Assembly: GCA_030390025.1 (NCBI GenBank)
Contig: JASTWF010000138.1
Location: 372,001 to 436,000 of the forward strand
Reading direction: 5' to 3'
Source: Squalus acanthias
Lineage: Eukaryota
DNA length: 64,000 nt
Positions 26,860 through 63,669 of the stretch are shown one piece after another. The translations under genes were made by a program, and so were the position numbers. Below the pieces are notes generated by a model. That model saw nothing but the letters and a program-made list of their open reading frames with translations, did not search any database and was not told where the DNA came from. Each line of letters opens with the position of its first letter. The stretch's first letter is position 1.

Positions 26860-27110
26860 TGGTCGATGGAAATGGTCCTCCATTGAACGCAATAAAGAAG
26901 ACAATCCCGTTGCTCTTTCGGCAGCTATAGGACGGAATATTTAACCGGCAATTTGCCGTCAACAACACAGCAGAGACCAATATTGTTGATGTTAAACAGA
27001 TGGCAGACATCAATGGCGCCGTCATTCAGTGAGTCATTTCACCTGTGAAAGAAATAAAATAAATGATAAAGGGTGATTTTATGTGTACATATTTGTACTC
27101 ATATTGTACT
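26860..27110 (+). pseudogene. Highly decayed TCR Vdelta/alpha-like exon, truncated by a CR1
   Basis: EDNPVAL, then after a frameshift GSYRTEYLTGNL...QQRPILLML...APSFSESF (26920-27039). This aligns with V1 EGDTVLLP-CNYPVIYTAANL...APAFTKRF. The FWY motif is deleted and there is no YYC or RSS. Confidence 0.45.
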
Positions 27111-39888: not shown

Positions 39889-39971
39889 CTGTAAGAAAGA
39901 GAGCGAAAGAAGAGAAGTTACAGAGTAAACTCCCAGCAGAAGGAATATATTTAACGGAATTATTGGTCAGA

Positions 39972-42390
39972 GATGGGGAGAGCAGGGAGAGATAAACCGA
40001 ACGGATGGGGAGAGCAGGGAGAGATAAACCGAACGGATGGGGAGAGCAGGGAGAGATAAACCGAACGGATGGGGAGAGCAGGGGAGAGATAAACCGAACG
40101 GATGGGGAGAGCAGGGGAGAGATAAACCGAACGGATGGGGAGAGCAGGGGAGAGATAAACCGAACGGATGGGGAGAGCAGGGAGAGATAAACCGAACGGA
40201 TGGGTCGAGCAGGGAGAGAGATAAACCGAACGGATGGGGGAGCAGGGAGAGATAAACCGAACGGATGGGGAGAGCAGGGAGAGATAAACCGAACGGATGG
40301 GGGGAGCGGGGAGAGATAAACCGAACGGATGGGGAGAGCAGGGAGAGATAAACCGAACGGATGGGGAGAGCAGGGAGAGATAAACCGAACGGATGGGGAG
40401 AGCAGGGAGAGATAAACCGAACGGATGGGGAGAGCAGGGAGAGATAAACCGAACGGATGGGGAGAGCAGGGAGAGAGATAAACCGAACGGATGGGGAGAG
40501 CAGGGAGAGATAAACCGAACGGATGGGGAGAGCAGGGAGAGATAAACCGAACGGATGGGGAGAGCAGGGAGAGATAAACCGAACGGATGGGGAGAGCAGG
40601 GAGAGATAAACCGAACGGATGGGGAGAGCAGGGAGAGATAAACCGAACGGATGGGGAGAGCAGGGAGAGATAAACCGAACGGATGGGGGAGCAGGGAGAG
40701 ATAAACCGAACGGATGGGGGAGCAGGGAGAGATAAACCGAACGGATGGGGAGAGCAGGGAGAGATAAACCGAACGGATGGGGAGAGCAGGGAGAGAGATA
40801 AACCGAACGGATGGGGAGAGCAGGGGAGAGATAAACCGAACGGATGGGGAGAGCAGGGAGAGATAAACCGAACGGATGGGGAGAGCGGGGAGAGATAAAC
40901 CGAACGGATGGGGAGAGCAGGGAGAGATAAACCGAACGGATGGGGAGAGCAGGGAGAGATAAACCGAACGGATGGGGAGAGCAGGGAGAGATAAACCGAA
41001 CGGATGGGGAGAGCGGGGAGAGATAAACCGAACGGATGGGGAGAGCAGGGAGAGATAAACCGAACGGATGGGGAGAGCAGGGAGAGATAAACCGAACGGA
41101 TGGGGAGAGCAGGGAGAGATAAACCGAACGGATGGGGAGAGCAGGGAGAGATAAACCGAACGGATGGGGAGAGCGGGGAGAGATAAACCGAACGGATGGG
41201 GAGAGCAGGGAGAGATAAACCGAACGGATGGGAGAGCGGGGAGAGATAAACCGAACGGATGGGGAGAGCAGGGAGAGATAAACCGAACGGATGGGGAGAG
41301 CAGGGAGAGATAAACCGAACGGATGGGGAGAGCGGGGAGAGATAAACCGAACGGATGGGGAGAGCAGGGAGAGATAAACCGAACGGATGGGGGAGCAGGG
41401 AGAGATAAACCGAACGGATGGGGGAGCAGGGAGAGATAAACCGAACGGATGGGGAGAGCGGGAGAGATAAACCGAACGGATGGGGAGAGCAGGGAGAGAT
41501 AAACCGAACGGATGGGGGAGCAGGGAGAGATAAACCGAACGGATGGGGAGAGCAGGGAGAGATAAACCGAACGGATGGGGAGAGCGGGGAGAGATAAACC
41601 GAACGGATGGGGAGAGCGGGGAGAGATAAACCGAACGGATGGGGAGAGCAGGGAGAGATAAACCGAACGGATGGGGAGAGCGGGGAGAGATAAACCGAAC
41701 GGATGGGGGGAGCAGGGAGAGATAAACCGAACGGATGGGGAGAGCGGGGAGAGATAAACCGAACGGATGGGGAGAGCGGGGAGAGATAAACCGAACGGAT
41801 GGGGGGAGCAGGGAGAGATAAACCGAACGGATGGGGAGAGCAGGGAGAGATAAACCGAACGGATGGGGAGAGCAGGGAGAGATAAACCGAACGGATGGGG
41901 AGAGCGGGGAGAGATAAACCGAACGGATGGGGGAGAGCGGGGAGAGATAAACCGAACGGATGGGGGAGCAGGGAGAGATAAACCGAACGGATGGGGAGAG
42001 CAGGGAGAGATAAACCGAACGGATGGGGAGAGCAGGGAGAGATAAACCGAACGGATGGGGAGAGCAGGGAGAGATAAACCGAACGGATGGGGAGAGCAGG
42101 GAGAGATAAACCGAACGGATGGGGAGAGCAGGGAGAGATAAACCGAACGGATGGGGAGAGCAGGGAGAGATAAACCGAACGGATGGGGGAGCGGGGAGAG
42201 ATAAACCGAACGGATGGGGAGAGCAGGGAGAGATAAACCGAACGGATGGGGAGAGCAGGGAGAGATAAACCGAACGGATGGGGGGAGCAGGGAGAGATAA
42301 ACCGAACGGATGGGGGAGCAGGGGAGAGATAAACCGAACGGATGGGGAGAGCGGGGAGAGATAAACTGAACGGATGGGGAGAGCGGGGAC
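39972..42390. repeat. ~32-bp purine-rich minisatellite (~75 copies) in the GPCR intron
   Basis: Unit gggagagataaaccgaacggatggggagagca. Confidence 0.97.
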
Positions 42391-42939
42391 AGCGAATCCG
42401 AGCAGGAGCCCGGGATGGAAGTTCCTGGGAAATGGGCTATTCTTGAATCCAGTCACTTACTTCATTGTTGTGAATTATCAATAACGCGTTGAGCTATAAC
42501 TTACTTCAATAAGTTAATTCCTTCACACCAAATCACAATTTCATTACTTATTGAATTAACTCACCCAATCTTAATTTATTAATTACTTAATCAAAGCAGT
42601 TAGTGATAAAAGCATTTGAGAAATTCAGCCAGGAACGACATATTTCTGAATCGGTATTAAATCTGGTAAAAATAAATGTTAACAGAAGACAAATAGCAAT
42701 TCCATTCACGTCATACAGTCATGTCCATTAATTGTTGGCCCTTTGTATTCTCGTGGCCTGTTCAATTTTGAGAGGGCCAGGATACCAAGTTCCCCAACCT
42801 CATCTTCCACTCACATGATCTGCGGGTTCTTCAGTTTAATGGTGGGATGGACTTTGAACATGTGGGCAAGGTTACTGCATTTTTCACAATATTACACATG
42901 TTGGAGTTCACTGCTTGTTTCACAGCCGCTAAACAGATT

Positions 42940-45710: not shown

Positions 45711-48371
45711 AGATTAAAGCTCTGCAGTCCTGCCACATCCAGTCGTGAATGGCGGTGCACAATTAAACAACTAATGGGAGGAGGAGGCTCCATGAATATC
45801 CCCATCCTCAATGATGACGAAGCCCAGCAGGCGAGCGCAAAAGACAAGGCTGAAACATTTGCAGCCAGAAGTGCTGAGTGGATGATCACATCATCCCCAC
45901 GATCACAGAAGCCAATCCGATTCACTCCACGTGATATCAAGAAACGACTGAGCGCACTGGATACAGCAAAGGTTATGGGCCCTGACAACATTCCGGTTAT
46001 CGTGCTGAAGACTTCTGTTCCGGAACTAGCCAAGCTGTTTCAGTACAGCTACACAACTGGCATCTATCCGACAATGTAGAAAACTGCCCAGGTATGTCCT
46101 GTCCACAAAAAGCAGGACCCGGCCAATTACCGGCCCATCAGTCTACTCTCAATCATCAGAAAATTGATGGAAGGTGTCATCGACAGTGCTATCAAGCGGC
46201 ACCTTCTCACCGATGCTCACTTTGGGTTCCGCCAGGACCACTCGGCTCCAGACTTCATTAAAGCCTTGGTCCAAACATGGACAAAAGAGCTGAATTCCAG
46301 AGGTGAGGTGAAAACTACTGCCCTTGACATCAACGCAGCATTTGACCGAGTGTGGTATCAAGGAGCCCTAGTAAAACTGAAGTTAATGGGAATCAGGGGG
46401 GTAATGCTCCACTGGCTGAAGTCATACAAAGGAAGATGGTTGTGGTTGTTGGAGGTCAATCATCTCAGCCCCAGGTCATCGTTGCAGGAGTTCCTCAGGG
46501 CAGTGTCCTAGGCCTAACCATCTTCAGCTGCTCCATCATTGACCTTCCCTCCATCATAAGGTCAGAAGTGGGGATCTTCGCTGATGACTGCACAGTATTC
46601 AGCGCCATTCGCAACTCCTCAGATAAGGAAGCACTCCATGCCCGCATGCACCAAATCCTGGATGACATTCAGGCTTGGGCTGATAAGAGGCAAGTAACAT
46701 TGCGCCACACAAGTGCCAGGCAATGAATATCTCCAACAAGTGAGAGTCTAACCACCGCCCCTTGACATTCAACGTTATCACCATCAACATCCTGGGGGTC
46801 ACCATTGACCAGAAACTTAACTGGACCAGCCACATAAATACTGTGGCAACAAGAGCAGGTCAAAGGCTGAGTATTCTGCGGCGAGTGTCTCACCTCCTGA
46901 CTCCACAAAGCATTTCCACCATCTACAAGGCACAAGTAAGGAGTTTGATGGAATACTCTCCACTTGCCTGGATGAGTGCAGCTCCAACAACACTCAAGAA
47001 GCTCGTCACCATCCAGGACAAAGCAGCCCGCTTGATTGGCACCCCATCCACCACCTTAAACATTCACTCCCTCCACCACCGGCGTACCGTGGCTGCAGTG
47101 TGTACCATCTACAAGATGCACTGCAGCAACTCGCCAAGGTTTCTTCGGCAGCACCTCCCAAACCCGCGACCTCTTCCACCTAGAAGGACAAGGGCAGCAG
47201 GCGCATGGGAACACCACCACCTCCAAGTTGCCCTCCAGGTCACACACCATCCTGACTTGGAAGTATATCGTCGATCCTTCATCGACGCTGGGTCAAAATC
47301 CTGGAACTCCCTCCCTAACAGCACTGTGGGAGTACCTTCACCACACGGACTGCAGCGGTTCAAGAAGGCGGCTCACCACCACCTTCTCAAGGGCAATGAG
47401 GGATGGGCAATAAATGCTGGCCTGGTCAGAGACGCCCACATCCCATAAACGAATAAAAAAAAGACATACCGAAACCGTGTGTAGTTTGTTTCCTTTTCTG
47501 CACCACATTCTTTTCTAATATGAGTGAAAGTTGTAAGGACAGTTTTTCACGCACTGCTGGTGTTAAGCTGTTGTTAACGAGGACCCGCCCTACACCTCAC
47601 CCTGGGGGTTTGAACCCGCTCCCGCGCTCTGCTCCCGGGCACTTTAAGCAGATTTGCAGTAAATTGCTGAAAAGCGCCGCTCGGCTGTTCCCTCCATTTT
47701 CTCTCAGTGCAAATCCAAAATCTGAAAATTATGGAACCTTAAATTAATCATTACAGGCACAAAGAAGGTCAGAACTTACCAGATCGATTTTAAACAGCAC
47801 TTTAAATGCAAACCACAGGAGGGGTCGGTGTTTGAAATGATGTTTAAATTACAGGGAGAGTTTATTCTTTAAGTCTGTTAAATTGTTTGTTCATGAACAG
47901 CAGACGCCATCGTTCTAATATCACGGATCTATAAATCACTCAGACAACAGACGGGATCATTGTTAGTTCTTTAGTTCACTGACCCGTGAGAGAAAGCTCA
48001 CTGGAGTCACGGTTACCAGTGTCCTGACGGTATGGCGAACGGAATTCTAGAGAACGAATTGACCCCGGAATAAACCAAACCAATTAATAACCCTGTGCTT
48101 CCCGGTTACAATAACCAGAAAATGATCTCTTTTCCACCCCCGGTCTCTAAAAGCGGAACCATTCCCCTATAAGGACACTGACTGTAGCCCAGCTCGGGGT
48201 GTTTCCATTCACTGGCAGCCAGCTCACCACCTACCGGTCTCACAGCACCACTGGGGACACAAGGAAGTGAGGTGAGAGCATCCTGAGACACGACAGCAGA
48301 TTATTGAGGGCGGGGATTAGAACGGGTGTCTTCAAATATCCAACTCCCCTTTTACAGAGCGGAAAGCGACA

Positions 48372-48417
48372 ATGCGGCTACTCAGCATCTGGGCTGTGTG
48401 GGGGGCATTTCTGACAG
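48372..48417 (+). CDS. Leader exon of TCR delta/alpha V gene V4
   Basis: MRLLSIWAVWGAFLT with phase-1 donor AG|GTAATT, paralogous to the V2 leader. A GC box (GGGCGGGG) is at ~48308. Confidence 0.92.
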
Positions 48418-48528
48418 GTAATTGTGGACCAAACACATCTCATCTTTTCTCTCATTTCTGATATGATTTAAATCTGAATTTTAAACACCTGCCGGTCTGA
48501 TCTTTTCCTGTTTGAACATGTTTTTCAG

Positions 48529-48835
48529 ATCTGAGTCTTGGAGATTCTGTCACTCAGCCGCTGTCCTCAGGAGTTAAGACAGAAGGAGAAGCGGTGACTT
48601 TAAACTGTACCTATGATACTACACAGAGCGGCTATTATTTATACTGGTACCGGCAACACCCAGACACACAGCCCGAGTTTATACTGTGGAAACACTCGAG
48701 CGGTTCTGAAGATAAAGCAGATTTTGCTAAAACCCGTTTCTCTGCTGTGCTCCAGACCTCGACTAAATTCACCAGTTTAACCATCTCCGGGCTGCAGCTG
48801 ACTGACGCTGCCGTGTATTACTGCGCCCTGAGACT
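48529..48835 (+). CDS. TCR delta/alpha variable exon V4
   Basis: DLSLGDSVTQPLSSGVKTEGEAVTLNCTYDTTQSGYYLYWYRQHPDTQPEFILW...DKADFAKTRFS...LTISGLQLTDAAVYYCALR is a typical TRDV/TRAV framework. Confidence 0.96.
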
Positions 48836-48874
48836 CACAGTGATGGAAAGCAGTCTCAGCCCTGTACAAAAACT
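48836..48874 (+). other. RSS (23-bp spacer) of V4
   Basis: CACAGTG, 23 nt, ACAAAAACT (48866-48874). Confidence 0.96.
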
Positions 48875-49218
48875 GCCATTGGACTGTAGGGCGGAGCTCC
48901 TGTCTGTTGGGGTTGTGTGGAATCGCGGGCAGATGCAGCCACAATGTGCAGCGCGCTGTCAGGCGCTCAAACACACACCGAGAGGAAACCAAATTAACCT
49001 CGGATCAAACTGTCACCCAACTGTTTCCAGGAGCGGCCGAGAAAACAAACTGCAGAATCCAATCGGCCCGAAAGATCGATCACAGAATGAACCGACCGGT
49101 TAAACTGTCCTTTCTGCTTCTGATCAGCTGTTTTCCCTTAAAGTCATAGATCGATGTTCAGATCAGCTCCGAGAAAGAGGTTGCTGACAGCGCCAGGAAC
49201 TTCCTGCTGGTCGCTCCG

Positions 49219-50403
49219 TTTTTTTATTCGTTTATGGGATGTGGGTGTTCCTGGCAAGGCCAGCATTTATTGGCCATTCCTAATTGCCCTTGAGAAGGTG
49301 GTGGTGAGCCGCCATCTTGAACCGCTGCAGTCCGTGTGGTGATGGTACTCCCACAGTGCTGTTAGGGAGGGAGTTCGAGGATTTTGACCCAGGGACGATG
49401 AAGGATCGGTTATATATTTCCATGTCGGGTAGGTGTGTGACTTGGAGGGGAGCTTGGAGGTGGTGGTGTTCCCATGCGCCTGCTGCACTTGTCTTTCTAG
49501 GTGGAAGAGGTCGCGGGTTTGGGAGGTGCTGTCGAAGAAGCCTTGGCGAGTTGCTGCAGTGCATCTTGTAGATGGTACACACTGCAGCCACGGTACTCCG
49601 GTGGTGGAGGGAGTGAATGTTTAAGGTGGTGGATGGGGTGCCAATCAAGCGGGCTGCTTTGTCCTGGATGGTGTCAAACTTCTTGAGTGTTGTTGGAGCT
49701 GCACTCATCCAGGCAAGTGGGGAGTATTCCATCACACTCCTTACTTGTGCCTTGTAGATGTTAGAAAGGCTTTGGGGATTCAGGAGGTGAGATATTTGCC
49801 GCAAAATACCTAGCCTCTGACCTGCTCTTGTTGCCACAGTATTTATGGGGCTGGTCCAGTTAATTTTCTGGTCAATGGTGACCCCCCAGGATGTTGATGG
49901 CGTGGGATTCGGCAATGGTAATGCCGTTGAATGTAAAATTGCCGTGATTAGACTCTCGCTTGTTGGAGATAGTCATTGCCTGGCACTTGTGTGGCGCGAA
50001 TGTTCCCTGCCACTTATCAGCCCAAGCCTGAACGTTGTCCAGGTCTTGTTACATGCGGGCATGGACTGCTTCATTATCTGAGGAGTTGTGAATGGCACTG
50101 AACACAGTGCAGTCATCAGCGGACATTCCCATTTCTGACCTTATGTTGGAGGGATGTCATTGATGAAGCAGTTGAAGATGGTTGGGCCTAGGTCACTGCC
50201 CTGAGGAACTCCTGCAGCTATTTCCTGGGGCTGTGTTGATTGACCTTCAACCAACACAACCATCTTCCTTTGTGCTGGGTATGATTCCCGCCAGTGGAGA
50301 GTTTCACCCCAATTCCCATTGTCTTCAGTTTTACTAGGGCTCCTTGATGCCACACTCGGTCAAATGCTGCCTTAATGTCAAGGGCAGTCAATCTCACCTC
50401 ACC
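49219..50403 (-). mobile_element. 5'-truncated copy of the same LINE family as 43960-47462
   Basis: LDIKAAFDRVWHQG, GVPQGS, ATRAGQRLGILR...HHHLLKGN. The poly(A) end appears as a T-run at ~49219. Confidence 0.9.
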
Positions 50404-51459
50404 TATAGGACAGGATCTGGTTCCCATATTCTGCCTGTGTGTGTTATTTCTTTCAGTGTATTCCTTCGAACCCGGATATTTAATGAGCTCGGTCCGTGCT
50501 TCAGCTTTCCCTCTGGAGGCTGGTATAAATTGCCATTCAGTGGTTCAGTTGTATCACACCCTATCAATGATTAAAGCGGCCAATCAGGACAGAGTTTCCC
50601 ACAATGCACAGCGGACCAGAAAAGCTCCTTTGTCGACCACGGGCCGCGCTGCACAATGGGAGCACTGTTCGCACATGCGCCACTCGCCAACCGCGTTAAA
50701 AGTCGCTATCTGTATCTTTATCTCTGTCGCATATTTTCTCCTTTTTATTAAGAAAGGGAGACTTTTTCTTTCGTGGAAATTGAAGTCACACGTCACATCG
50801 CACGTCACACAAACATGGCCGCCGCCGCTTTGCCCTGCAGTGGATGACGCCACAATCCATTCTAAATGTCACAGTACTGTAATTGGCTGCTTTTCACATT
50901 CAGTCACGGACAGAGTCAGGGGCAGTCTACAGCGTCCACTCTAAGCTAAAGTGTTCCAGTTTGAGCAGTCTGTGACCCCTGACTCAGGGCTCCGACCACG
51001 GGGGAATGTATCACCCCGGGGCGTCTTAAAGGGGCCCTGCACCGCCAGAGAGTCCTCGAGCCTGGGGTCAGGACAGGGACGGGGAGACATAGTGATGGTT
51101 GCTAAAAGTAATTGTAGCTTAGAGGGGAGGGAGAGAGACTGCGGCAGAGACAATTTCAACACCAACTCCATCCATTCCCAAACTTCCTTCCGAGCCCTGC
51201 AGAAGGGCCGCTAATTCTTCCCTCCCTTACCCTGATGTGATATTCAAACACAAGAGACATCACGCCTGAACTCCGGGAGTTTCGAGGAAAAGCAGCGCCC
51301 CAGCAGAAGGAACATTCTGGAAGATACTCGGGCCTGGTCAGAAACCTCTGGAGATGTTCAGGTGGCCGGGAGGCTCCGAAAGAATCCGATAAGACGGTGA
51401 AGGAGGAGGAGCGAAACTTTAGTGAAACAGGGAGCGAAGGTCTGACGGTCACTGACGGA

Positions 51460-51720
51460 ACCCTGGAGTGATGTTCAGTGAGTTCGGGTAGATGGTATCA
51501 GAGGGCATTGAGCAGAGCAGCGAGAAATGATCCCTGGGGTGAAGTTCGGTGAGTTCAGGTAGATGGTATCAGAGGGAATGGAGCAGAGCAGGAAGATAGG
51601 ATCCCTGGGGTGATGTTCATTGAGTTCGGGTAGATGGTATCAGAGGGCATTGAGCAGAGCAGCAAGAAATGATCCCTGGGGTGAAGTTCGGTGAGTTCAG
51701 GTAGATTGAGCAGAGCAGGT
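51460..51720. repeat. ~70-bp tandem repeat x4 (two ~141-bp dimers)
   Basis: ccctgg.gtga.gttc..tgagttc.ggtagatggtatcagaggg.a..gagcagagcag repeated. Confidence 0.8.
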
Positions 51721-52773
51721 AGACAGGTCGTCAGGGATAAAGGAGACAGAGGGTCAGGGTTAATGTGTGTGGCTAAGATTGGAGAAGGGTTGGAACTGGT
51801 TACCACAGAGCTCGGCCTACTTTATTCCTCGGTCCGTGTGAAACATTTGGACTCGGGTCTCCTTTAAAGGGGCGAATCCAAAATAAAAATACATTCTATG
51901 GTGCCCACCCCGAGAGGACGGCTCCACTCGCACACTTGGCTGAACAAAACCAAAATGATGTTCCATAATAATAGAATTTTGCCCGTCTTTCATAAAACCT
52001 GTATTCAGCGGTGACCACCGGCCGCAGAAAGTTCCAAATGTACCTGTGGGCACCGCGTGATCCCTCACCTGCTCTCTATCAAATACAGTCTCTCCTTCTT
52101 TCCTCTCTGCCTTGGGCGTCTGAGTGTGTGTAAACAAAACAGATGGCGATAGAGTCTGTGTGTCAGTTCGGCCCAGTCTCTGGGAATCATTCCCAGTGTT
52201 TGTGCTTCCTGGTGTGCCTGTGTCAGATATCTAACCCATGCTGTACCTGCCCTGGGCGTGTTTGATGGGAAAGAAAGAAAAATAAAGACTTGCATTTATA
52301 TAGCGCCTTTCACGACCACCGGACGTCCCAAAGCGTTTCACAGCCAATTAAGTACTTTTTGAAGTGTAATCACTGTTGTAATGTAGGGACAGTGTAGAGG
52401 GAGATTTACTCTGCCATGTACTGTACTGTAGGGCTGTGATGGAGCAGAGCACTGCTCTTTAATAGAACCTGTCATGTGACTGTGACAGACCATAATATTA
52501 GAGGGGAGTGCGAGGTCGCTGTGCAGTCTTTCCGCCTCTGGGCCTTGACATGAAAAGTCAGGGGTAAAGGTGTCGTTATTCTGATGGGACACTGGGTGGC
52601 GCAGTGGCTCCTTAACGGGAGAGACTTGGGTTCAAATACAACCCAGACAGGACGGGTGAAAAATACCTGTCAGGGAAATAAAACAAAGTGTGATAGGCAA
52701 AAGGGAGCGGTGTGGAGGAGCCTTGGAGAAAGGAATTCAGCAAAGTCCAAGTTAGTTAATTTGTCATTCCAGA

Positions 52774-53151
52774 TTTATTAATAATTTCACAGAGAACAAT
52801 TTACAGAGAAGTTTAAAAAAACTTAACATCAAAGTGAATATAACAACTGAGCGTCACATTGAGACCAGAATACAGGCGTTCTGAGCTGCCAGTTATCTGT
52901 ACAACTGTAACAGGCACCAGGAGCTCAACATAAAGGGAAGGGAACAATCGTGGATTAGGAACGAGAAACGTTATTATTTACACATGAAACATTCAAACAA
53001 CTGTAAGATGCATTTACATTATGGTCACGATGATCTCAAACATTTCAAACACAGAGACGGAAATCCCGTTTATGATTTTCTCAGCTACAGATTCTGATCT
53101 ATTAACTGAAGGCATTTGACTCTGAGAATCACCAAGAGGACATATTTTATT
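52774..53151 (-). terminator. Candidate poly(A) signals of the membrane IgM transcript
   Basis: AATAAA on the - strand at 53151-53146 and 52779-52774, in AT-rich sequence 3' of TM2. Confidence 0.5.
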
Positions 53152-53213
53152 TTCATGACACAGAGATGTTAATAAACAAAGGAGGAAAATCCACGGCGTC
53201 CAAATTCAACCGT

Positions 53214-53222
53214 TCACTTCAC
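53214..53222 (-). CDS. IGHM: IgM heavy chain TM2 exon (VK*)
   Basis: ...ttgtcacAG|GTG AAG TGA completes the canonical K-V-K cytoplasmic tail in phase 0 with TM1. Confidence 0.8.
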   Translation of the reverse strand: MK

Positions 53223-53231
53223 CTGTGACAA

Positions 53232-56200
53232 TGAGTTCTCAGGTGACTGATGAGCCCAATGCGGGACCTACTGTCTCTGTCACAGGTGGGGCAGACGGTG
53301 GTTGAAGGGGCAGCTGGGTGGGGTGCTTGGGTTGACGTGCGCTCCTTCTGCTCTTTGCGCTTGGCTTCCACTTGCTCCCGACAAAGAGACTCGAGGTGTT
53401 CGGCGCCTTCACGGATGCTTCTCTCCACTTTGTGTGATCTTGGACCAGGGATTCCCAGGTATCGGTGGGGCTGTTGCACTTTTTCAAGGAGGCTTTGAGG
53501 GTGTCCTGGAAGCGTTTCCTCTGCCCACCTGGGGCTCTCTTGCCGTGTCGGAGCTCCGAGTAGAGCGCTTGTTTTGGGAGTCTCGTATCGGGCATGCGGA
53601 CGATGTGACCCGTCCATCGGAGCTGATCGAGCGTGGTCAAAGCTTCGATGCTGGGGATGTTGGCCTGAGCGAGCACACTGACGTTGGTGCGCCTATCCTG
53701 CCAATGGATTTGCAGGATCTTGCGGAGGTGCGTTGGTGGTAACTCTCCAGTGCTTTGAGGTGCCTGCTGTACATGGTCCATGTCTCTGAGGCATACAGCA
53801 GGGCGGGTATTACTGCTGCTCTGTAGACCATGAGCTTGGTGCTGGGTGTGTGGCCCTGGTCTTCAAACACTCTCTTCCTCAGGCGACCGAAGGCTGCACT
53901 GGCACACTGAAGGCGGTGTTGGTCTTCGTCATCGACGTCTGCCATTGTTGACAGTAGGCTGTCGAGGTATGGAAAGTGGTCCACGTTGTCCAAGGCCTCG
54001 TCATGGATTTTGATAATCAGGGGGCAGTATTGTGTGGCGAGGGCAGATTGGTAGAGGACCTTTGTCTTCCGGATGTTTAGTGAAAGGCCCATGCTCTCGT
54101 ATGCTTCGGTGAAGGTGTTGACGATAGTTTGGAGTTCGGCCTCAGAGTGAGCGCAGACGCAAGCGTCGTCTGCATACTGTAAATTCGATGACAGAGGATG
54201 GGACGACCTTGGATCTGGACTGGAGGCGACGGAGGTTGAACAGTTTTCCGTTTGTTCTGCAGATTAGCTCCACTCTAGCGGGGAGCTTACTGAGGGTGAG
54301 ATGGAGCATTGCAGCCAGGAAGATCGAGAAGCGCGTTGGTACGATGACACAGCCTTGCTTGATACGCTTCGTACGTGAATTAGGTCTGTGGTAGATCCGT
54401 TGGTCAGGATCCTGGCTTGCATGTCATCGTGAAGCAGGCGGAGGATGGTGACAAACTTTTGAGGGCAGCCGAATTTGCGGAGGATACTCCATAATCCCTC
54501 ACGGTTGACAGTGTCGAAGGCCTTTGTGAGGTCAAAGAAGGCCATGTACAGCGGTTGGTGCTGTTCCCTGCATTTCTCTTGTAATTGACGTGTGGTGAAG
54601 ATCATGTCCATTGTGCCTCTTAGTGGGCGGAATCCTCATTGCGACTCTGGGAGGAGTTCTTCAGCCACTGGGAGAAGGCGATTGAGGAGGATTCTTGCGA
54701 TGACTTTCCTTGTGGCAGTCAGCAGGGAGACTCCTCTGTAATTACCGCAATCGGACTTGTCACCTTTCTTGAGGATGGTCACCATTACGGCATCTTTGAG
54801 ATCCACAGGCATGCTCTCCTTCTTCCAAATAAGAGAAATGAGTTCATGTATTCGCGCCAATAGTGTTTCTCCGCCATGCTTCAGCGCCTCGGTGGGGATT
54901 CCATCTGCTCCTGAGGCCTTGTTGTCCTTCAGTTGTCGGATGGCCTTTTCAACCTCATGCCAGGCTGGGGTTGTGCTGAGGTGGTTGCGGGTAGCGTGCT
55001 GCTGGATGGAGTTGAGGACACTCGCTTCGAAGACAGAGTCTCGGTTAAGGAAATCTTCGAAGTGCTCCTTCCAGTGGGCACTGACTGCCTCTCTATCCTT
55101 GATGAGTACCTCTCCGTTCTTGGCCCACAGTGGGGTAGGGCCTTGGGTGCTTGGGCCGTAGATGGTCTTGACTGTGCTAAAGAATCTACGCACGTCGTGA
55201 TTGTCGGCTAGCTGCTGGATCTCCTGCGCTTTCTCCACCCACCATCTGTTCTTTAGGTCGCGAGTTTTTGTTGGACCTCGGCCTTCAGGCGTCTGTAGAG
55301 CTGCTTTCTTGCTCTCTTGTTCTGTTTCTGCTTCCAGATCAGGAATGCCTTGCGCTTGCGGCTTATTAGCTCCTGGATCTCCTGGTCGTTCTCGTCGAAC
55401 CAGTCTTGGTGTTTCCTGGTCGAGTGACCGAGTGTCTGTTCACATGTGCTGATTATGGAGGCCTTGAGTGCAGACCAAGCGCTGTGGACACTTTTGTCTC
55501 TGCATTACTGGGAGCCGTCACGTTGTTTTTGAGGCGCAGCCTGAATAGGGCTTTCTCAGCAGGGTGTTTGAGTGCTCCAGCGTTGATTTTCCTGCGCCAT
55601 TATTTCTGTTGCTGACGCTGTTTTGGGGCTACATTGATGGAGATGACAGAGCAGATTAGGCGGTGGTCTGTCCAGCAGTCGTCAGCTCCTGTCATGGCGC
55701 GGGTGATATGGACATCCTTGCTTGGACGATGATGTAGTCCAGCAGATGCCAGTGCTTGGACCGAGGGTGTTGCCTTGAAGCCTTGTACCTGTCTCTCTGA
55801 CGGAACAAAGTGTTGGTTTTGACAAGGCCAGGTTCTAAGCATTTCGTCAGGAGGGTACCGTTGGAGTTGGCTTTCCCTACCCCTTCTCTGCCGATCACAC
55901 CTCCCCAGAGGTCTGTGTCCTTTCCAACTCTGATGTTGAAGTCGCCGAGGAGGATCAGCTTGTCGCCCTTTGGGACTCGGGACAGGGATTGTTGGAGACT
56001 GAAGTACACTTCCTCTTTGGTCTCCTCTGTGGCTTCCAGTGTTGGGGCGTATGCACTGATGACCGTAGCGCACTGATTCTGGGCTAGGGTGAGCCGTAGA
56101 GTCATGAGGTGTTTGTTTATTCCGCAGGGGGAGTCTCTGAGACATTCAACTAGTTCATTTTTTATGGCGAAGCCTATCCCATGGAGACGGCGTTCTTCTT

Positions 56201-56640
56201 CAGGTTTGCCTTTCCAGAAGAAGGTGTAACCACCACCTTGCTCCTTGAGCTGGCCTTCCCCTGCCCACCGGGTCTCGCTTAGGGCGGCGATGTCCATGTC
56301 GAAACGTCTTAGCTCCCGGGCAACAATAGCAGTACGGCCTTCCAGTCTGTCACTGTTGGGGTTGTCCATGAGAGTCCTGACGTTCCAGGACCCGAACTTC
56401 ATTTTAAAGGGTGGAAAATGCCTGTGCGTGAATTCTTTTAACGTGGGGTGGCCATTGCACACCAGCTACCACACGGGCTTGACAAAGCAAGGTCTTGGTC
56501 CAATGGAAAGGGGATCCAAGACGATTGGAGACCAGGCTCTGCTACATCGGCCGAGCACACACACACAAACATACTCCAACTGCCCTCCTCCCTCCTCCCG
56601 CAGGTCCTCTCTGCCTGGGTTTCACACGCTGCAGTGTGGT
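53232..56640 (-). mobile_element. Near full-length RTE (BovB-like) LINE, frameshifted
   Basis: KFGSWNVRTL...IAALSETR...GYTFFWKG, LGDFN, GADGIP, NYRGVSLL, FFDLTKAFDTV, QYADD, QLRWTGHIVRM, C-terminal CPTC...GLISHLRTH. Confidence 0.93.
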
Positions 56641-56674
56641 CCCCCCGACCCCGCTGCTGGTCCACGCTGCGCCA

Positions 56675-57090
56675 CTCCTGGGCCTCGACCTCGCTGCTGG
56701 GCTCGTCCTCGCTCCTGGGCCTCGTCCTCGCTCCTGGGTCCCGACCTCGCTCCTGGGCCCCGTTCTCGCTCCTGGGTCCCGACCTCGCTCCTGGGCCTAG
56801 ATCTCGCTCCTGGGCTCCGTACTCGTCCCTGGGCCTCGTCCTCGCTCCTGGGCCTCGACCTCGCCCCTGGGTCTTGTCCTCGCTCCTGGGTCCCGACCTC
56901 GCTCCTGGGCCTCGACCTCGCTCCTGGGTCCCGAACTCGCTCCTGGGCCTCGTTCTCGCTCCTGGATCCCGTCCTCCTTTTAGTGTGTCTCCTTCCAGTG
57001 AGTGTGTCCCGCGGTGCGTCTCCTTCCAGTGAGTGTGTCCCACGGTGCGTCTCCTTCCAGTGAGTGTATCCCGCGGTGCGGCTCCTTCCA
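56675..57090. repeat. 19-bp GC-rich repeat (~15 copies) followed by a 31-bp repeat x3
   Basis: ctcgctcctgggcctcgac-type units at 56675-56970 and tccttccagtgagtgtgtcccgcggtgcgtc at 56985-57090. Confidence 0.85.
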
Positions 57091-57098
57091 CTTCTCAC

Positions 57099-57226
57099 CT
57101 TCACGAGAGTGACGGCAGTGCTGTAGGAAATGCTCAGGACGAACAGGATGATGAATGTGGAAGCGGTTGTCCAGATGTTGCCGTTCTCTTCCTCATAGTC
57201 TTCAATCGAGATGTGGTCTGAGGAAT
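57099..57226 (-). CDS. IGHM: IgM heavy chain TM1 exon
   Basis: Acceptor catccccgtAG, then (D)SSDHISIEDYEEENGNIWTTASTFIILFVLSISYSTAVTLVK, then donor AAG|GTGAG. It has the acidic spacer and the WTTASTF...YS Ig TM signature. Not in the ORF track. Confidence 0.95.
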
Positions 57227-57869
57227 CTACGGGGATGTAGTGGCGGAAATATATTAAGATCGTTTATTAATCCAAGATATCATATTATTATTATATATTC
57301 TCCTTTCTTTTCCTTAAGTTATTAGTTTGTTCTCTAATTTAATTTTTAATGTGTCTCTTGTGTTAATTTAATCACTCTCAGCAATCTATCTCTGTTCCTA
57401 ACTCCACAGCCGATCTTCCTTTATGATCCTCCTATAGTCCGTGTTGGACAATATGACATTTTTTCTTCAATGACATACGCAAATTGATTTTGCATTAATT
57501 TCGTACGATTTATCAGTCGGGAATAATATGATAAAATATCGAGGGATGTTTACTGACTAAAATCGATTATTTTAACGACAGGTTTTTATAGATAGTTATT
57601 TGGAGACTGTCAAGGGAGCTGGGAAAGAGATCAGATGTGAGTTATAATCTTGCTTATTTGTTTCTTATGGCAATGCTCTGAACATAATTAACTTGTATCA
57701 GTTTCCAACAAGAACATTGATTCAGTGTATGTGTAGGACCAGAATAGAGAAATGTGAGATGTTACGTTATGAGGAATTATTTATTCAGTACAATCGTTGA
57801 AGACTGTGTCCGTAAAAACTGCATTTTAATTCTACATTCGTCGATAGCCTGACGTTTTTTGGGCGCTTT

Positions 57870-58385
57870 AGTGATTGTGTTTGTGTGTATGACGAACTTT
57901 TGTTTTGGATTAGTCTGAGTTTCTGTGTTAATGTGTGTGTTGATGTGTAAGTGTGTGTGTATTTATGTTTAAGTGTGTGCGTGTTTTGTATAAGTGTTTG
58001 TCTATATTTACGTGTCAGCACGTGCGTATTTAGGTGCAACTGTGTGTGTTTGCCTGTATGTGTGTGTGTTTGTGTGTAATTGTGTATGTGTTTATGCAAG
58101 CGTGTGTGTGTGAATGCGTGTGTTTGTGTGTGTTTTGTGTAATTGTGTGTGTGTATTTTTGCTATTGTTCAAAGTTTCAGAGAGTACCAATAACTGGGTC
58201 TGATAATGACGCTGTGTATTGTATTCTGGGTATGTGTAATATACGGTGTCAGTGTGTTAATGTGTGTGTTTGTGTGTAAATCTGTGTGTGCTTGTGTGTA
58301 AGTGTGCACTTACAATAAACACACATACTTACACAAAATCGCAAACACACTTACACATAAACACAGACACACTCACTTTACACGC
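57870..58385. repeat. Degenerate (TG)n tract followed by an inverted (CA)n tract
   Basis: TG-rich to ~58300, CA-rich from 58305 to 58385, centred on tgtaagtg-tg-cacttaca. Confidence 0.8.
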
Positions 58386-58607
58386 ATTCTTCCCCGCTCT
58401 GTGTAAATGTGTTCTGTGTGAGACGCAATGTGACGTCAACCGATGGAGTGCAATAATTCAACCGATGGGCCGCAGAACCATCAGAGACACAACCGTGAGA
58501 AACCCGCAGAGGATTCAATCAACATTTAGATTTGGACTATTAAAATACAATCTGTTAGTTTACAAATAACAGGGACAGGTTTACTCCCAGCACTTGTTAA
58601 AGATAAT

Positions 58608-59369
58608 GGGCCAAAAATTCGGCACTTGCCGGGTGAGTACGCGCTGTGTGCTCACCCGGGAGGGGCTCCTGAAGTGCCGGTTTCCTGCATGCACTACGCA
58701 GGCGCGGGAAAACAGAACTTCCGGTCTCGTGAAGGGACCGGTTCAGAGGTGAACCGCGTGCGCAGAAGAGGCTCCGCGCTCGCAGCGAACTTCGGTTATT
58801 TTTCAGGTTTCTCCGGGAGGGTAAGTATTGAAGAAGCTGTGCTTTTAAAAAGGAGGCGCGAGACCCGTTTTCAACAAGGTAAGTGGTTAATTAATTACAA
58901 TGTAAATTTTTTTTCAACAGGTTTATCTTTTTTAGATACTTTAAAGAAACGTAAGTTTATTTTTAGCACTGTTAAAAAGAATTTTAATTTTTTCAAAGAT
59001 TTAAATTTTTGTTTAAAGTAGTTAATTTATTTAACTTATAGTTATTTTAAAAATGTGATGTTTTTTTAAAATTTATTTGAAGTTTAGGTGTTGTTTTGGG
59101 GCCGATTTCAATTCATAGATTTGACAGGTCCTGTCAAATCATTGAATGAAAGATGGTCTGCTGCCATTGGCTCTCCATGGCCCACGTGATCCCAGGGGAC
59201 GCATCATACTAACTACGCCCCTGGGATACACAAGCACTGCGCGCAGGCAGTTGGGGGAGGCCCAGGAGCTGAAGTCCCCATGGGCCGATTGGTCAACGGC
59301 AGGCACGGTAGGTAGGTGCGCGCGGGATCCTTGCACCCGCGGGAAGCCAGGGAGCCTAATTTCTGGGCC
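58608..59369. mobile_element. MITE family A copy 3 (more divergent)
   Basis: GGGCCAAAAATT...AATTTCTGGGCC with AAT on both flanks. The core is homologous to copies 1 and 2. Confidence 0.8.
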
Positions 59370-59494
59370 AATATGTTGACTAAATATTTATAACACAAAA
59401 TGATTCCCATGCAGCAAGATTAATGTTTTCGGACATTGAGTTAGAAGCTGACTTACTACTGATGGCAACTGAGTTCATATAATTGAGATTGGTT

Positions 59495-61320
59495 CACCAC
59501 CCCTCTCTATGATGGGAGAGTGGGAGGAACAGTGGGTTCACAATTGCACTTCCCCCTCTCTCTGGTGAGCGAGTGGGAGGTGCAGTGGGATTACAATTAC
59601 CCTTTCCCCTCTCTCTGGTGGAGGACTGGGAGGCACAGTGGGTTAAAAATTGACCTTCCCCCTCTCTCTGGTGAGGGAGCGGGAGGTACAGCGGGTTAAC
59701 AATTGCCCTTTCCTCTCTCTCTGGTGGGGGAGTCGGGGTACACTGGGTTAATAATTGCCCTTTCCCCTCTCTCTGGTGGGGTAGTGGGAGGTACAGCGGG
59801 TTAACAATTGCCCTTTCCCCTCACTCTGGTGGCAGAGTGGGGGTAGAGTGGATTACCAATTGTCCTTTCCCCTCTCTCTGTTGCGGGAGTGAGAGGTACA
59901 GTGGGTTAACAATTACACTTTCCCCGCTCTCTGGTGGGGGAGTGGGAGTACAGTGGGTTAACAATTACCCTTTCGCCTCTCTCTGGTGAGGGAGTGAGAG
60001 GTACAGTGGGTTAACATTTACCCTTTCCCCTCTCCCTGGTGGGGGAGTGGGGGTACATTCGGTTAACAATTGCCCTTTCCCCTTTCCCTGGTGGGGGAGT
60101 GGAGGTAAATTCGGTTAACAATTGCTCTTTCCTCTCTCTCTGGTGGGGGAGTGGGGGTACAGTGGGTTAACAATTGCCCTTTCCCCTCTCCCTGGTGGGG
60201 GAGTGGGGGTACATTCGGTTAACAATTGCCCTTTCCCCTCTCTCTGGTGGGGGAGTGGGAGGTACAGTGTGTTAACAATTGCCCTTTCCCCTCTCTCTGG
60301 TGGGGGAGTGGGGGGTACAGTGGGTCAACAATTGCCCTTTCCCCTCTCTCTGTTGGGGGAGTGTGAGGCACAGTGGGTTAACAATTGCCCCTTCACCTCT
60401 CTCTGGTGGGAGAGTGGGAGGTACAGTGGGTTAACAAGTGCCCTTTCCACTCTCTCTGGTGGGGGAGTGGGGGTACAGTGGGTTAACAATTGCCCTTTCC
60501 CCTCTCTCTGGTGGGGGAATGGGAGGTACAGTGGGCTGACAATTGCCGTTTCCCCTCTCTCTGTTGGGGGAGTGTGAGGCACAGTGGGTTAACAATTGCC
60601 CTTTCCCCTCTCTCTGGTGGAGGAGTGGGGAGTACAGTGGGTTAACAATCGCCCTTTCCCCTCTCTCTGGTGGGGGAGTGGGGGTACAGTGGGTTAACAA
60701 TTGCCCTTTCCCCTCTCTCTGGTGGGGGAGTGGGGGTACAGTGGGTTAACAATTGCCCTTTCCCCTCTCTCTGGTGGAGGAGTGGGGGGTACAGTGGGTT
60801 AACAATCGCCCTTTCCCCTCTCTCTGGTGGGGGAGTGGGGGTACAGTGGGTTAACAATTGCCCTTTCCCCTCTCTCTGGTGGGGAAGTGGGAGGTACAGT
60901 GGGTTAACAATTGCCCTTTCCCCTCTCTCTGGTGGGGGAGTGGGAGGTACAGTGGGTAAACAATTGCCCTTTCCCCTCTCTCTGGTGGGGGAATGGGGGG
61001 TACAGTGGGTCAACAATTGCCCTTTCCACTCTCTCTGGTGCGGGAATGGGGGGACAGTGAGTTAACAATTGCCCTTTCCCCTCTCTCTGGTGGTGGAGTG
61101 GGGCTACAGTGGGTTAACAATTGCCCTTTCCTCTCTCTCTGTTGGGGGAGTGGGGGGTACAGTGGGTTAACAATTGTCCTTTCCCCTCTCTCTGCTGGGG
61201 GAGAGGGCGTTACAGTGTGTTAACTATTGCCCTTTCCCATCTCTCGGCTGGGGGAGTGGGGGTACAATGGGTTAATAATTGCCCTTTCCCCTCTCTCTGG
61301 AGGAGGAGTGGGGGTACAGT
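59495..61320. repeat. ~53-bp minisatellite (~34 copies) in the Cmu4-TM1 intron
   Basis: Unit ccctttcccctctctctggtgggggagtgggaggtacagtgggttaacaattg. Confidence 0.97.
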
Positions 61321-61708
61321 TCGTGTTCGTGTGTGGCCTCATTTCAGATCGCAGAGGTTGCGATGCTGCAAAATAAAATTGGCCCCAATTCTGAAGGGTT
61401 GGACAACACGAGAAACAGGGACACCGAGACCTAAATGTGCCGCGTTTGTTTGTCGGAAGTGGGAACTTTACAGATTCCCCCCAGCGGGAGGAAAGTTGCT
61501 GACGTGACTTTGAGGAATCCTGTCATGAAAGAGCTTTAGTCTGTCTCTAACCCGTGGTGTATCTGAGCTGGGAGCGCTGGCTGTACAAGCCTTGGGCCCG
61601 AGACCGGCAAATATCCTGATTCAGATAAACAGCCCTCCCCTTGGCCAAAATGGGAAACAAAATTAATCGAGCGGCTGTGTGTGTAACTGACGATTGGAAG
61701 AAAAGGCC

Positions 61709-61723
61709 TTTATTGGTTTTATT
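61709..61723 (-). terminator. Tandem poly(A) signals of secretory IgM
   Basis: AATAAA on the - strand at 61723-61718 and 61714-61709, 30-40 bp after the stop. Confidence 0.85.
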
Positions 61724-61751
61724 CAAGAACTGAAATGCAATCGAGAAATTC

Positions 61752-62143
61752 TCATTGACAAGAATTGACGGTGTCCATCAGAACAAGGGAAATGTTCACA
61801 AAACTGGGTTTACCGCTGGATTTATTAACCGTTCTGTTGATGATCTTCAAGGGGATCGCTTCATGTCCCACCACACAGGAGTAAGAAGCGCCGCTGGCCC
61901 ACTCCTCCGCTGCAATGGATAACAGGCTGTACATGAAGAAGGAACTGCTGCCGTTCTCCGCCATCACCTCGGTGTTCTTGTAGTTGCCGGAATTCACCGG
62001 CTTGTCATTGACGGTCCACTTGACGAAGATCTCTCGTGGGGAGAAACCTCTCACTAAGCAGGTGAGGCTGACGAACCACTGAGCGGAGACTCCTTCTGCC
62101 GGGGGCAGGAGGACAGACACGGACGGTTCCCGCGGATCTTCAA
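61752..62143 (-). CDS. IGHM: IgM heavy chain Cmu4 plus secretory tailpiece exon
   Basis: Acceptor ttctgcAG, then (V)[14 protein letters not shown]...[17 protein letters not shown]...[25 protein letters not shown]...[23 protein letters not shown]. It has the tailpiece NIS glycan site and penultimate Cys. The internal donor AGCG|GTAAAC at 61813 serves the membrane form. Confidence 0.96.
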
Positions 62144-62661
62144 CTGCAGAACAATTACAATAAAGGTCAATAAACTGGAGAATTCCAGAGACAATGAAAC
62201 CGGCGGTTAGATGTGAGAGAAATGTGCTTTGCGCTGAATTTTAAAGGACTCCCTTTTCCCCTCTGTGTCCTGTCCGGTTTTCCAGCCCGGAGCAGAGGGA
62301 GATAGAATCCTTCTTTCTGGGAGCTTGAAGAGTTGGAATGGAAAATTACATGGAATTCACATCATAGAAACAGACCATTCGGCCCAACTGGTCAATGCCG
62401 CTGTTTATGCTCCACACGAGACTCCTCCCACCTTACTTCATCTAACCCTAATAACATATCCTTCTATTCCTTTTTTCCTCATTGACTTATCCAGCTTCCC
62501 TTTAAATGCATCATCTCGGGTCCCAGAGGTTTTAATTAGTGGAATTACCCATTGAATTATCAGAGCAGTCCATTAAAACACTGAATAGAACGAATTGGGC
62601 CGTGAACAAGCACCAGAAATAGTCACAGAGTCTCACTCATTGCTACAATCTCACCGCTCAC

Positions 62662-62970
62662 CTTTTTCCTTGTGGATGGAATCTCTTATAGGAGTCGCCA
62701 TATCCTGATGGCTCACCACGCAGTAGAACTCATCCCCACTCAACCAGGCTTGTGTCGAGATGTTTAAGTTGCTGATCACACTGTTGGGAGCCTCTCCGGG
62801 TTGGACGGCAATCTCTGATTTCAAAGTCTCCTTTTCTCGGGTCCAGGACACGTTGACTCCATAAGGAGCATTAGACACGACGCAGGTTAAGGTCACCGTC
62901 GCCTCCAGTAAGACCTGTTCCAGTGACGGTTGCGGAAGAGTGATTTCTGGATCGCTGCATGAGGAACCAT
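62662..62970 (-). CDS. IGHM: IgM heavy chain Cmu3 exon
   Basis: Phase 1-1, 309 nt: (D)[42 protein letters not shown]...[19 protein letters not shown]...IHKEK, donor G|GTGAG. Upstream exons lie beyond the window. Confidence 0.95.
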
Positions 62971-63669
62971 CTGTGAACAGAAATGAAAGTCAAGCAAAGC
63001 TTCATCTTCAGAATCAGGACACCAGTATTCAGCCTTCACTCTCTCAGGGAGAATAAATCACCTTTGAGATATTAACCTCTCGCTGTTGCATAAACACCAT
63101 CGTTATTCGAAGGACAAAGAATTGACAACCATTCCTGGAGGCTCTTTAACATTTCCTGTGTATTTGCTTCCATAGCCTCCTGTAATGGGCTGTGAAGCAA
63201 ATAACCGGCGTAAAAACATTGAATAAATTCGGCCGCAATTTTATTAGGCAGTAAATAGCGCTCTTCCTGAAATCCCTTGCTCCTTTACGCCCGTCTATAG
63301 ATCCTTGTGCCCGAACGCATTCCCGATCATTATAATGGCTCCGCCCCCAGGGTCAAGAGCTCTACACGAAACTTACACTGGTTCAAACCGAGTGTCAAAT
63401 GAAATCCAGAATTTTAGGTGCAACAGGAAACAAAATTAATTTTCTGGTATCTTGTTGCGATTTTGGGGGCGATGAAAATGTGCAGGAATCAGTTGCAGCC
63501 CCGCCAGAGGAAAAGTGAAAGGTCGGGTGTTGGAATTCCAAGGGGTCCTTTGTGGTGGAGAATAATGTGTAATGCCGATGTGAAGTAGTTTGTTCATTTC
63601 TGTCATTAGTAAGCATTTAACATGTCTGGTGAGAGAGTCAGAAGGAAATATGACCTCAGGGCAGTAATA

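Follow-up and report, generated by a model that had tools for sequence, protein, structure and literature searches.

How the 3′ half of an antibody gene comes to lie beside T-cell receptor (TCR) variable segments is the question raised by a 64,000-nucleotide stretch of the Squalus acanthias genome (contig JASTWF010000138.1, positions 372,001 to 436,000; below, the window, whose own numbering is used for all coordinates). On direct reading, the 3′ half of an IgM heavy-chain gene on the − strand was found tail-to-tail with a TCR alpha/delta-type V segment on the + strand. The original prediction was that a single, still functional IgM cluster may lie in inverted orientation inside the TCR alpha/delta locus; its VH could join TCR delta segments by inversion, the cluster would be deleted by other joins, and one locus would serve both B and T cells.

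The Cmu3 exon (62662 to 62970, − strand) is bounded by the acceptor cacag/AT and the donor AAAG/gtgagc, both in phase 1. It contains a Pfam C1-set domain (E 8.9e-10) and shares 58 of 101 residues with the Cmu3 part of P0033. Cmu4 with the secretory tailpiece (61752 to 62143, − strand; C1-set E 1.9e-21) ends in a TGA stop at 61754-61752 and includes an internal donor for the membrane form, G/GTAAA, between 61814 and 61813. Residues 6-128 of Cmu4 and tail align to solved IgM mu chains; a fragment from Chiloscyllium punctatum is 83% identical, and Callorhinchus IgH 63%. The tailpiece, with its N-glycosylation site and penultimate cysteine, is kept in four of five aligned relatives, the fifth being tailless. 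Two AATAAA signals (61723-61718 and 61714-61709, − strand) follow within 45 nt of the stop. The intron between Cmu4 and TM1 includes a 53-bp tandem array of 34.6 copies (59500 to 61320; Tandem Repeats Finder). Cmu1, Cmu2 and VH-D-D-JH fall past base 64000, and the window covers the 3′ half of the gene.

The TM1 exon (57099 to 57226, − strand; acceptor ccccgtag/AT, donor AAG/gtgaga) carries the conserved receptor transmembrane motif and matches the mammalian mu membrane isoform (E 5.4e-08; six of eight PDB matches). Tandem arrays of 19/38 bp and 31 bp (56675 to 57090; Tandem Repeats Finder) start 9 nt past its donor. The remainder of the TM1-TM2 intron is largely filled by a decayed, frameshifted non-LTR retrotransposon (LINE) fragment (53230 to 56462, − strand), recognised from its open reading frames and an endonuclease domain (E 5.7e-11). 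This fragment lacks a 3′ end of its own, and no second copy was found in the 64-kb window. Its homology stops at 53230, 7 nt upstream of TM2, and four X5 contigs diverge below that base. Since a LINE without a 3′ end reaches this far, the branch point and pyrimidine tract of TM2 must be LINE-derived.

TM2 itself (53214 to 53222, − strand; acceptor gtcacag/) consists of two codons and a stop (GTG AAG TGA, Val-Lys-stop); in the best TM1 match, the chain continues two residues beyond the end of the alignment. When the 41 bases that follow its stop codon are compared in register with those of a TM2-like site at 27042, 23 of 41 positions agree, a level reached by one of 19892 random 41-mers. This match, the end of the LINE immediately upstream and the status of TM2 as the only ag/GTNAAR-stop candidate from TM1 to the V recombination signal sequence (RSS) show that it is more than a chance occurrence. 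A candidate membrane poly(A) stretch lies 3′ of TM2 (52774 to 53151, − strand), with AATAAA at 53151-53146 and 52779-52774. The site at 27042, also on the − strand, is an orphan relic and the second TM2-like site of the window.

That Cmu3, Cmu4 with tailpiece, TM1 and TM2 are open, that their splice sites are canonical and that both forms have poly(A) signals had been noted before and is borne out. The constant-region 3′ half combines C1-set homology, a secretory tailpiece with poly(A) signals and membrane-form exons, as in the IgM of shark miniclusters. From such a gene, secreted mu mRNA would terminate after the Cmu4 tailpiece, and membrane mu mRNA would be spliced from the conserved internal Cmu4 donor to TM1 and on to the two-codon TM2.

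The position of the LINE also suggests a different reading, namely that the cluster is a pseudogene or deficient in the membrane form, either because the insertion spoils TM2 splicing or because the 5′ exons are damaged. In addition to the end of LINE homology at 53230, the TM2 acceptor has 11 pyrimidines in 20 positions versus 14-16 in the other three acceptors. Furthermore, run X11, which behaves like RNA because it covers only repeat bins in the depth analysis, is almost blank downstream of TM2 (52448-53155, one bin at 3.45). However, membrane mu mRNA is reported to be far scarcer than the secreted form (PMC2435157), hence little can be concluded from a single contig set in which it is missing. 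The Cmu3 and Cmu4 exons, the tailpiece and TM1 are moreover open and conserved, and AG and GT are present at every splice site. Of the words sampled from 61700-62980, X11 contains 0.40 (about 0.55 by an exon-only estimate) and the RNA-like runs contain 0.26-0.41, which reflects near-identical Cmu3/Cmu4 and is not cluster-specific. Among the runs listed, the best reaches 0.47 of the Cmu3-Cmu4 words, so that none attains one half, and these words could stem from paralogous clusters. A defective cluster is considered unlikely; the 3′ end for the membrane form is genuine, though modified.

The V segment facing the IgM gene (48372 to 48874, + strand; the 48-kb V) is complete and of TCR alpha/delta type, with a leader at 48372-48417, a V exon at 48529-48835 (V-set E 3.3e-16) and, as found by an RSS scan, CACAGTG-23-ACAAAAACT at 48836-48874. 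Upstream of it, the + strand carries another three Vs, which belong to other families. The 12.5-kb V (12327 to 12801) is also complete, with a leader at 12327-12372, a V exon at 12456-12762 (V-set E 1.3e-14) and the RSS CACAGCG-23-ACAAAAACT; it is 48% identical to the 48-kb V. In both, the leader is followed by a phase-1 intron, and the V-set exon carries the conserved Cys, Trp and Tyr-Tyr-Cys. For the 21-kb V (20955 to 21264; V-set E 7.6e-12), which has a consensus 23-bp RSS at 21226-21264, a leader exon was looked for and not found. The 4-kb V (3711 to 4057; V-set E 9.7e-14) has an in-frame TAG as its last codon, no leader in the 260 nt upstream, and an RSS with the non-consensus heptamer CACGGCG, a 23-bp spacer and the nonamer ACAAAAACT. 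Pairwise identity is only 27-49%, which places the four Vs in different families. All four carry the 23-bp-spacer RSS at the 3′ end (heptamers CACAGTG in two, CACAGCG and CACGGCG), and each RSS points toward the IgM gene.

Because IgH V segments share the 23-bp spacer (PMC2435157), its length cannot separate them from TCR alpha/delta V segments, and the type was assigned from protein comparisons. Among 31 candidates, 28 database proteins matched the 48-kb V with E≤1e-5. The closest is from C. punctatum (72%), and five Callorhinchus proteins are 59-61% identical. The name T-cell receptor alpha/delta variable is given to four of these 28, and none is named as an Ig heavy or light chain. A different origin of the + strand Vs, for instance from Ig light chains or some other receptor family, might be argued from the PDB searches, in which multi-V-domain antibody constructs score highest overall. 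These top scores are, however, sums over two or more stretches. Among the 60 matches listed for the 48-kb V, 14 are single-stretch, and nine of these, including the two best, are TCR alpha or delta chains. TCR alpha chains are also among the PDB matches of the 21-kb and 4-kb Vs; those of the 12.5-kb V are all antibody constructs and uninformative on family. By sequence similarity, the nearest named relatives of the + strand Vs are thus TCR alpha/delta V segments and not Ig, as originally proposed, and assignment to a non-TCR family is most improbable.

Between the last base of the TM2 stop (53214) and the end of the 48-kb V RSS (48874) there are 4340 bases without N, in agreement with the predicted gap-free distance of about 4.3 kb, and the tail-to-tail observation is confirmed. 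Most of the spacer (48875 to 53213) is repetitive, with part of a LINE at about 49.2-50.4 kb (from open reading frames and contig depth), a 71-bp array at 51461-51706 (Tandem Repeats Finder) and a high-copy element at 52.1-52.45 kb (contig depth). In the analysis of contig depth and layout, no DNA contig was found to span it, and contiguity of the IgM gene and the V thus rests on the assembly. The assembly might accordingly have misjoined two contigs here, one with IgM and one with a TCR V, very high-copy repeats being present at 49.1-50.5 kb and 52.1-52.45 kb. Such an error is nevertheless very unlikely. The sole N run of the window is at 6228-6496, and none follows to its end. Both X5 and X3 have one contig in which 49220 is followed directly by 50408, without a 1187-base repeat insert (the shorter side of these contigs being only 29 letters), which indicates that the two flanks are neighbours in other copies. 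Junctions of this kind have also been published for other species (PMC12227049).

Contig depth, summed values of which are not equal to copy number, is about tenfold higher over the 48-kb V and over the sequence 3′ of TM2 than in the intervening spacer. In X5, it is 2535-6340 over 48200-49084 and 1963-2707 over 52625-53155. In the non-repeat bins of 50501-52624, it is 125-408 in six and 987 and 1230 in two, leaving out the 71-bp array (51563-51739, 2785) and two high-copy bins (52094-52447). X3 and X1 give the same pattern; X11 has zero depth over the 48-kb V (48200-49084). The DNA contig depth fits several near-identical copies, and the TM2-like relic at 27042 is a further sign of recurrence. 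Work by Flajnik et al. in 2025 on four elasmobranch species (PMC12227049) presents IgH miniclusters with intervening TCR alpha/delta-type V exons as a general feature of elasmobranch genomes. The arrangement of IgM gene and TCR-type V recurs in the genome, matches the published elasmobranch pattern and is not a one-off insertion, and a lone, stranded, inverted IgM cluster does not fit.

Of the earlier interpretation, the intact constant region within the window and its tail-to-tail position relative to the Vs stand, and the single inverted cluster does not fit the tenfold depth and the generality of the pattern. As a whole, a single functional cluster engaging in VH-TCR delta inversion joins, removed by deletion and serving both lineages, is unlikely. 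The geometry is as described, and chimeras of IgM and IgW V with TCR delta are reported in sharks (PMC12227049 and PMC5931798, both citing Criscitiello et al. 2010), the proximity of the segments being offered as a basis for such transrearrangements (PMC12227049). The original prediction also pointed to Ig clusters reported inside the nurse shark TCR delta locus, described there as chiefly pseudogenes. On the other hand, no D, J or TCR C segment was found in the 64-kb window, and none of the eight hits of the RSS scan is a credible J-type signal. Moreover, 97 partial rearrangements from nurse shark B-lineage cells are reported as intra-minilocus, with one possible exception (PMC2435157).

Thus, the window is most probably one junction of an elasmobranch region in which IgH miniclusters are interleaved with TCR alpha/delta-type Vs. 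In B cells, the IgM gene would be used via rearrangement inside its own cluster, and in T cells the Vs would be used with D, J and C segments located elsewhere. By the tail-to-tail geometry, the 23-bp RSS of the 48-kb V would be oriented like the RSSs 5′ of the neighbouring IgM D segments, which lie past the window end, and inversion could hence build a TCR-V-D-J-Cmu chain, the mirror image of the known chimeras of IgH V with TCR delta. That TCR-type Vs and IgM miniclusters form one duplication unit, which would act as a dispersed V reservoir and yield this hypothetical chain by inversion, is conceivable and highly improbable.

The junction is real, is ordinary for elasmobranchs and was already described in 2025, the linkage and interleaving of Ig and TCR genes having been published in PMC12227049. 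If the region works as proposed, the same chromosome stretch would supply antibody genes to B cells and Vs to T cells. This would bear on the evolutionary separation of the Ig and TCR loci and on the making of shark Ig-TCR chimeras. The window adds base-level detail of a junction: how far apart the two genes lie (4.3 kb) and how they are oriented, the intact signals for splicing and poly(A) addition, the LINE fragment next to TM2 and an orphan second TM2-like relic. Annotation can profit from this, as can the design of primers addressing cluster-specific expression and rearrangement.

Criscitiello et al. in 2010 and Deiss et al. in 2019 reportedly described VH-type segments used by TCR delta, with Ig and TCR segments close together. 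The closeness is shared with the window, whereas here it is TCR alpha/delta-type Vs that stand beside the IgM gene.

In PMC12227049, IgM, IgW and IgNAR miniclusters of elasmobranchs (sharks and rays) show linkage with TCR alpha/delta, and the region is linked on the same chromosome to the TCR alpha/delta constant genes and PSMB5. Like this complex, the window has an IgH minicluster with a TCR alpha/delta-type V alongside; the link with PSMB5 and with TCR C genes is not visible within its 64 kb. The main text of PMC12227049 is without base-level anatomy, orientation and distances (coordinates are in its table S1), which are supplied by the window.

The shark IgM minicluster, reviewed in PMC5192425, is organised as VH-D1-D2-JH-Cmu1-4-TM and includes germline partly joined forms. 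The window agrees with this plan in Cmu3, in Cmu4 with its tailpiece and internal donor for the membrane form, in TM1 and in a TM2 of two codons, and differs from it in a TM1-TM2 intron filled with LINE sequence to 7 nt of TM2. Frogs, birds, coelacanth and others also have VH-like V genes within their TCR delta loci (PMC12227049), where Ig-type and TCR-type segments are mixed as in the window. What those loci contain, however, are individual V segments rather than complete V-D-J-C antibody genes that have both a secretory and a membrane end.

The 3' end of an IgM heavy-chain gene lies on the - strand, tail-to-tail with a TCR-type V segment on the + strand, and the original prediction of this arrangement was confirmed by exons, signals and a recombination signal sequence (RSS) read in the sequence. 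All IgM exons are on the - strand and were read directly. Cmu3 (62970..62662) is flanked by an acceptor cacag/AT and a donor AAAG/gtgagc, and Cmu4 with the secretory tail (62143..61752) is followed by two AATAAA signals at 61723-61709. The membrane-form donor G/GTAAA is conserved at 61814/61813. TM1 occupies 57226..57099 and TM2, which comprises two codons and a stop (Val-Lys-stop), 53222..53214; AATAAA signals follow at 53151 and 52779. Intron phases are consistent: the Ig exons and the splice from Cmu4 to TM1 use phase 1, and the splice from TM1 to TM2 uses phase 0. The sole N run of the window (6228-6496) is far from the IgM/V junction. In the Cmu4-TM1 intron a 53-bp unit is repeated 34.6 times in tandem (59500-61320), and arrays of 19/38-bp and 31-bp units (56675-57090) start 9 nt past the TM1 donor.

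The IgM exons were each searched singly. Pfam identified C1-set domains in Cmu3 (E 8.9e-10) and Cmu4 (E 1.9e-21), and returned no domain match for the 42-residue TM1. Solved IgM mu chains align with Cmu4 and its tail across residues 6-128, and 18 of 21 protein-database candidates for this exon fall at E<=1e-10, the top relative being a Chiloscyllium punctatum fragment (83% identity). One assembly protein is 91% identical across 78% of the query, and the Callorhinchus 'immunoglobulin heavy chain IgH' shares 63%. The domain cysteine, tryptophan and tailpiece are all conserved in the Cmu4 alignment. Cmu3 is identical at 58 of 101 positions to the Cmu3 part of the database relative P0033. TM1 matched mammalian mu in its membrane isoform (E 5.4e-08; 6/8 matches at E<=1), and in the best TM1 match the chain stops two residues beyond the alignment, as is expected if TM2 supplies two residues.

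The + strand carries four V-set exons (Pfam E 3.3e-16 to 7.6e-12). The V nearest the IgM gene, at 48 kb, is complete in sequence, with a leader at 48372-48417, a V exon at 48529-48835 and an RSS at 48836-48874 (CACAGTG-23-ACAAAAACT); 4340 bases separate the end of this RSS from the final base of the stop in TM2. The V at 12.5 kb (12327-12801) is also complete, with the heptamer CACAGCG. The 21-kb V (20955-21264) has a consensus 23-bp RSS, and its leader exon was not found; this V begins cacag/GTAAAG, which is also readable as a strong splice donor. In the 4-kb V (3711-4057) an in-frame TAG is the last codon before a weak heptamer, CACGGCG, and a search of the upstream 260 nt revealed no leader; this V is possibly a pseudogene, or possibly rescued by trimming at the joint. 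Pairwise identity among the four Vs is 27-49%, hence they represent different families and not recent copies. A 297-residue GPCR, encoded by a single open exon, is situated between V segments (38987-39880, - strand; Pfam 7tm_1, E 8.3e-20), and its nearest Atlas clusters (score 0.97) are named 'probable G-protein coupled receptor 139'. Long satellite-like arrays at 39967-42456 and 1813-2955 read as very long repetitive ORFs; at 40-42 kb the purine skew is extreme owing to the first of these arrays.

The V segments were typed by their nearest named relatives. For the 48-kb V, 28 of 31 protein-database candidates fall at E<=1e-5; a C. punctatum protein ranks first (72%), and five Callorhinchus proteins share 59-61%. 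Four teleost entries among these 28 relatives are named 'T-cell receptor alpha/delta variable', and none of the 28 bears an Ig-chain name. In the PDB, antibody constructs that carry several V domains have the top totals, and for this reason only single-stretch rows were used for typing. Among the 60 rows listed, TCR alpha or delta chains account for 9 of the 14 single-stretch rows, including the two best. TCR alpha chains were also among the PDB matches of the 21-kb and 4-kb Vs, and the PDB search was uninformative for the 12.5-kb V.

The assignment of TM2 was doubted at first. Its coding part is only nine bases, and the TM1-TM2 intron holds a decayed non-LTR retrotransposon (LINE) fragment, with an endonuclease domain (E 5.7e-11), several frameshifts and its own 3' end missing, whose - strand reading frame passes straight through TM2. 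The TM2 codons might for that reason be taken as LINE sequence. Further copies of the LINE, sought in the window to set its 3' boundary, were not found, and the boundary was set from loose contig ends in the read data. Four contigs of sequencing run X5 resemble the LINE above 53230 and differ in their letters below it; therefore the LINE homology ends 7 nt before TM2, and neither the acceptor nor the exon is LINE. This divergence of other LINE copies at 53230 rules out a LINE origin of the TM2 codons. The fragment has displaced the native TM1-TM2 intron as far as position -7. The TM2 acceptor has 11 pyrimidines in 20 positions, compared with 14-16 at the Cmu3, Cmu4 and TM1 acceptors, and, judged from its sequence, this membrane acceptor is compromised.

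Between TM1 and the RSS of the V, TM2 is the single ag/GTNAAR-stop site. Elsewhere in the window the exact motif AG-GTGAAR-TGA occurs at one place, on the - strand at 27044, within an orphan TM2-like site at 26993-27050 (tttcacag/GTGAAATGA). In register, 23 of the 41 bases past the stop are identical at the two sites; random 41-mers gave 10.3 +/- 2.8 identities, and 1 of 19892 reached 23. This count was preferred to a gapped local alignment of the 300 nt after both sites, which equalled the best of 500 shuffles and was out of register. Site uniqueness, the LINE boundary and the in-register likeness to the 27-kb site support the candidate TM2 as a real exon. No Cmu or TM1 relics were found near the 27-kb site at E<=1, and this site is possibly all that remains of a further IgM cluster on the - strand. 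Some 30 nt upstream of it is a LINE tail on the + strand.

Of 22 runs listed for 61700-62980, all of them in the form of contigs, 20 contain part of this region. The top word share is 0.47, so that no run reaches half; for exon-only words the share is estimated at ~0.55. Comparison of 48200-53500 with the contigs of X5, X3, X11 and X1 revealed none that spans this region; the junction appears contiguous in the assembly. In DNA-like runs, the V and the 530 bases downstream of TM2 are approximately ten times deeper than the non-repeat spacer between the RSS and TM2. In X5, depth is 2535-6340 over the V, 1963-2707 downstream of TM2, and 125-1230 in eight non-repeat spacer bins (125-408 in six of them), leaving out the bin of a 71-bp array (2785) and two high-copy bins. 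This pattern is consistent with several near-identical copies, summed contig depth not being equal to copy number. In one contig each of X5 and X3, 49220 is joined to 50408 with four other letters between and a shorter side of only 29 letters, skipping a 1187-base LINE-derived repeat insert; thus the flanks adjoin in other copies or alleles without the insert.

In X11, depth is confined to repeat bins (14/30), and therefore this run behaves like RNA. It contains 0.40 of the Cmu3-Cmu4 words, which are not specific to this cluster; hence near-identical IgM constant exons appear to be transcribed. Depth over the 48-kb V is zero and 52448-53155 is represented by a single bin (3.45), and this RNA-like run supports neither that V nor the membrane 3' end.

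A still-functional IgM cluster, inverted within the TCR locus and serving both B and T cells, had been proposed. This interpretation is supported in part. The proposed geometry is correct, and the 3' half of the IgM gene, which is the part within the window, is intact, but the sequence of the membrane acceptor is compromised, and the picture of one cluster inside a TCR locus gives way to that of a probable recurring architecture, for which the depth pattern and the 27-kb relic are partial checks. It is very improbable that TCR-type Vs were amplified together with IgM clusters and that inversion could connect them to IgM D-J, yielding TCR-V-Cmu chains. In nurse shark, Malecek et al. 2008 (PMC2435157) found that partial IgH rearrangements take place inside the minilocus, apart from a single possible exception. 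Germline clusters that are partly joined (VD-J, VD-DJ) are described as common in cartilaginous fish in a review (PMC5192425). Literature searches gave no account of IgM/TCR-V interleaving more detailed than that of Flajnik et al. (PMC12227049), whose table S1 may list this locus. That paper reports some TCR alpha/delta-type V exons between IgH clusters, and proposes proximity as an explanation for Ig V to TCR delta transrearrangements. The arrangement is of a kind already in print in this 2025 paper.
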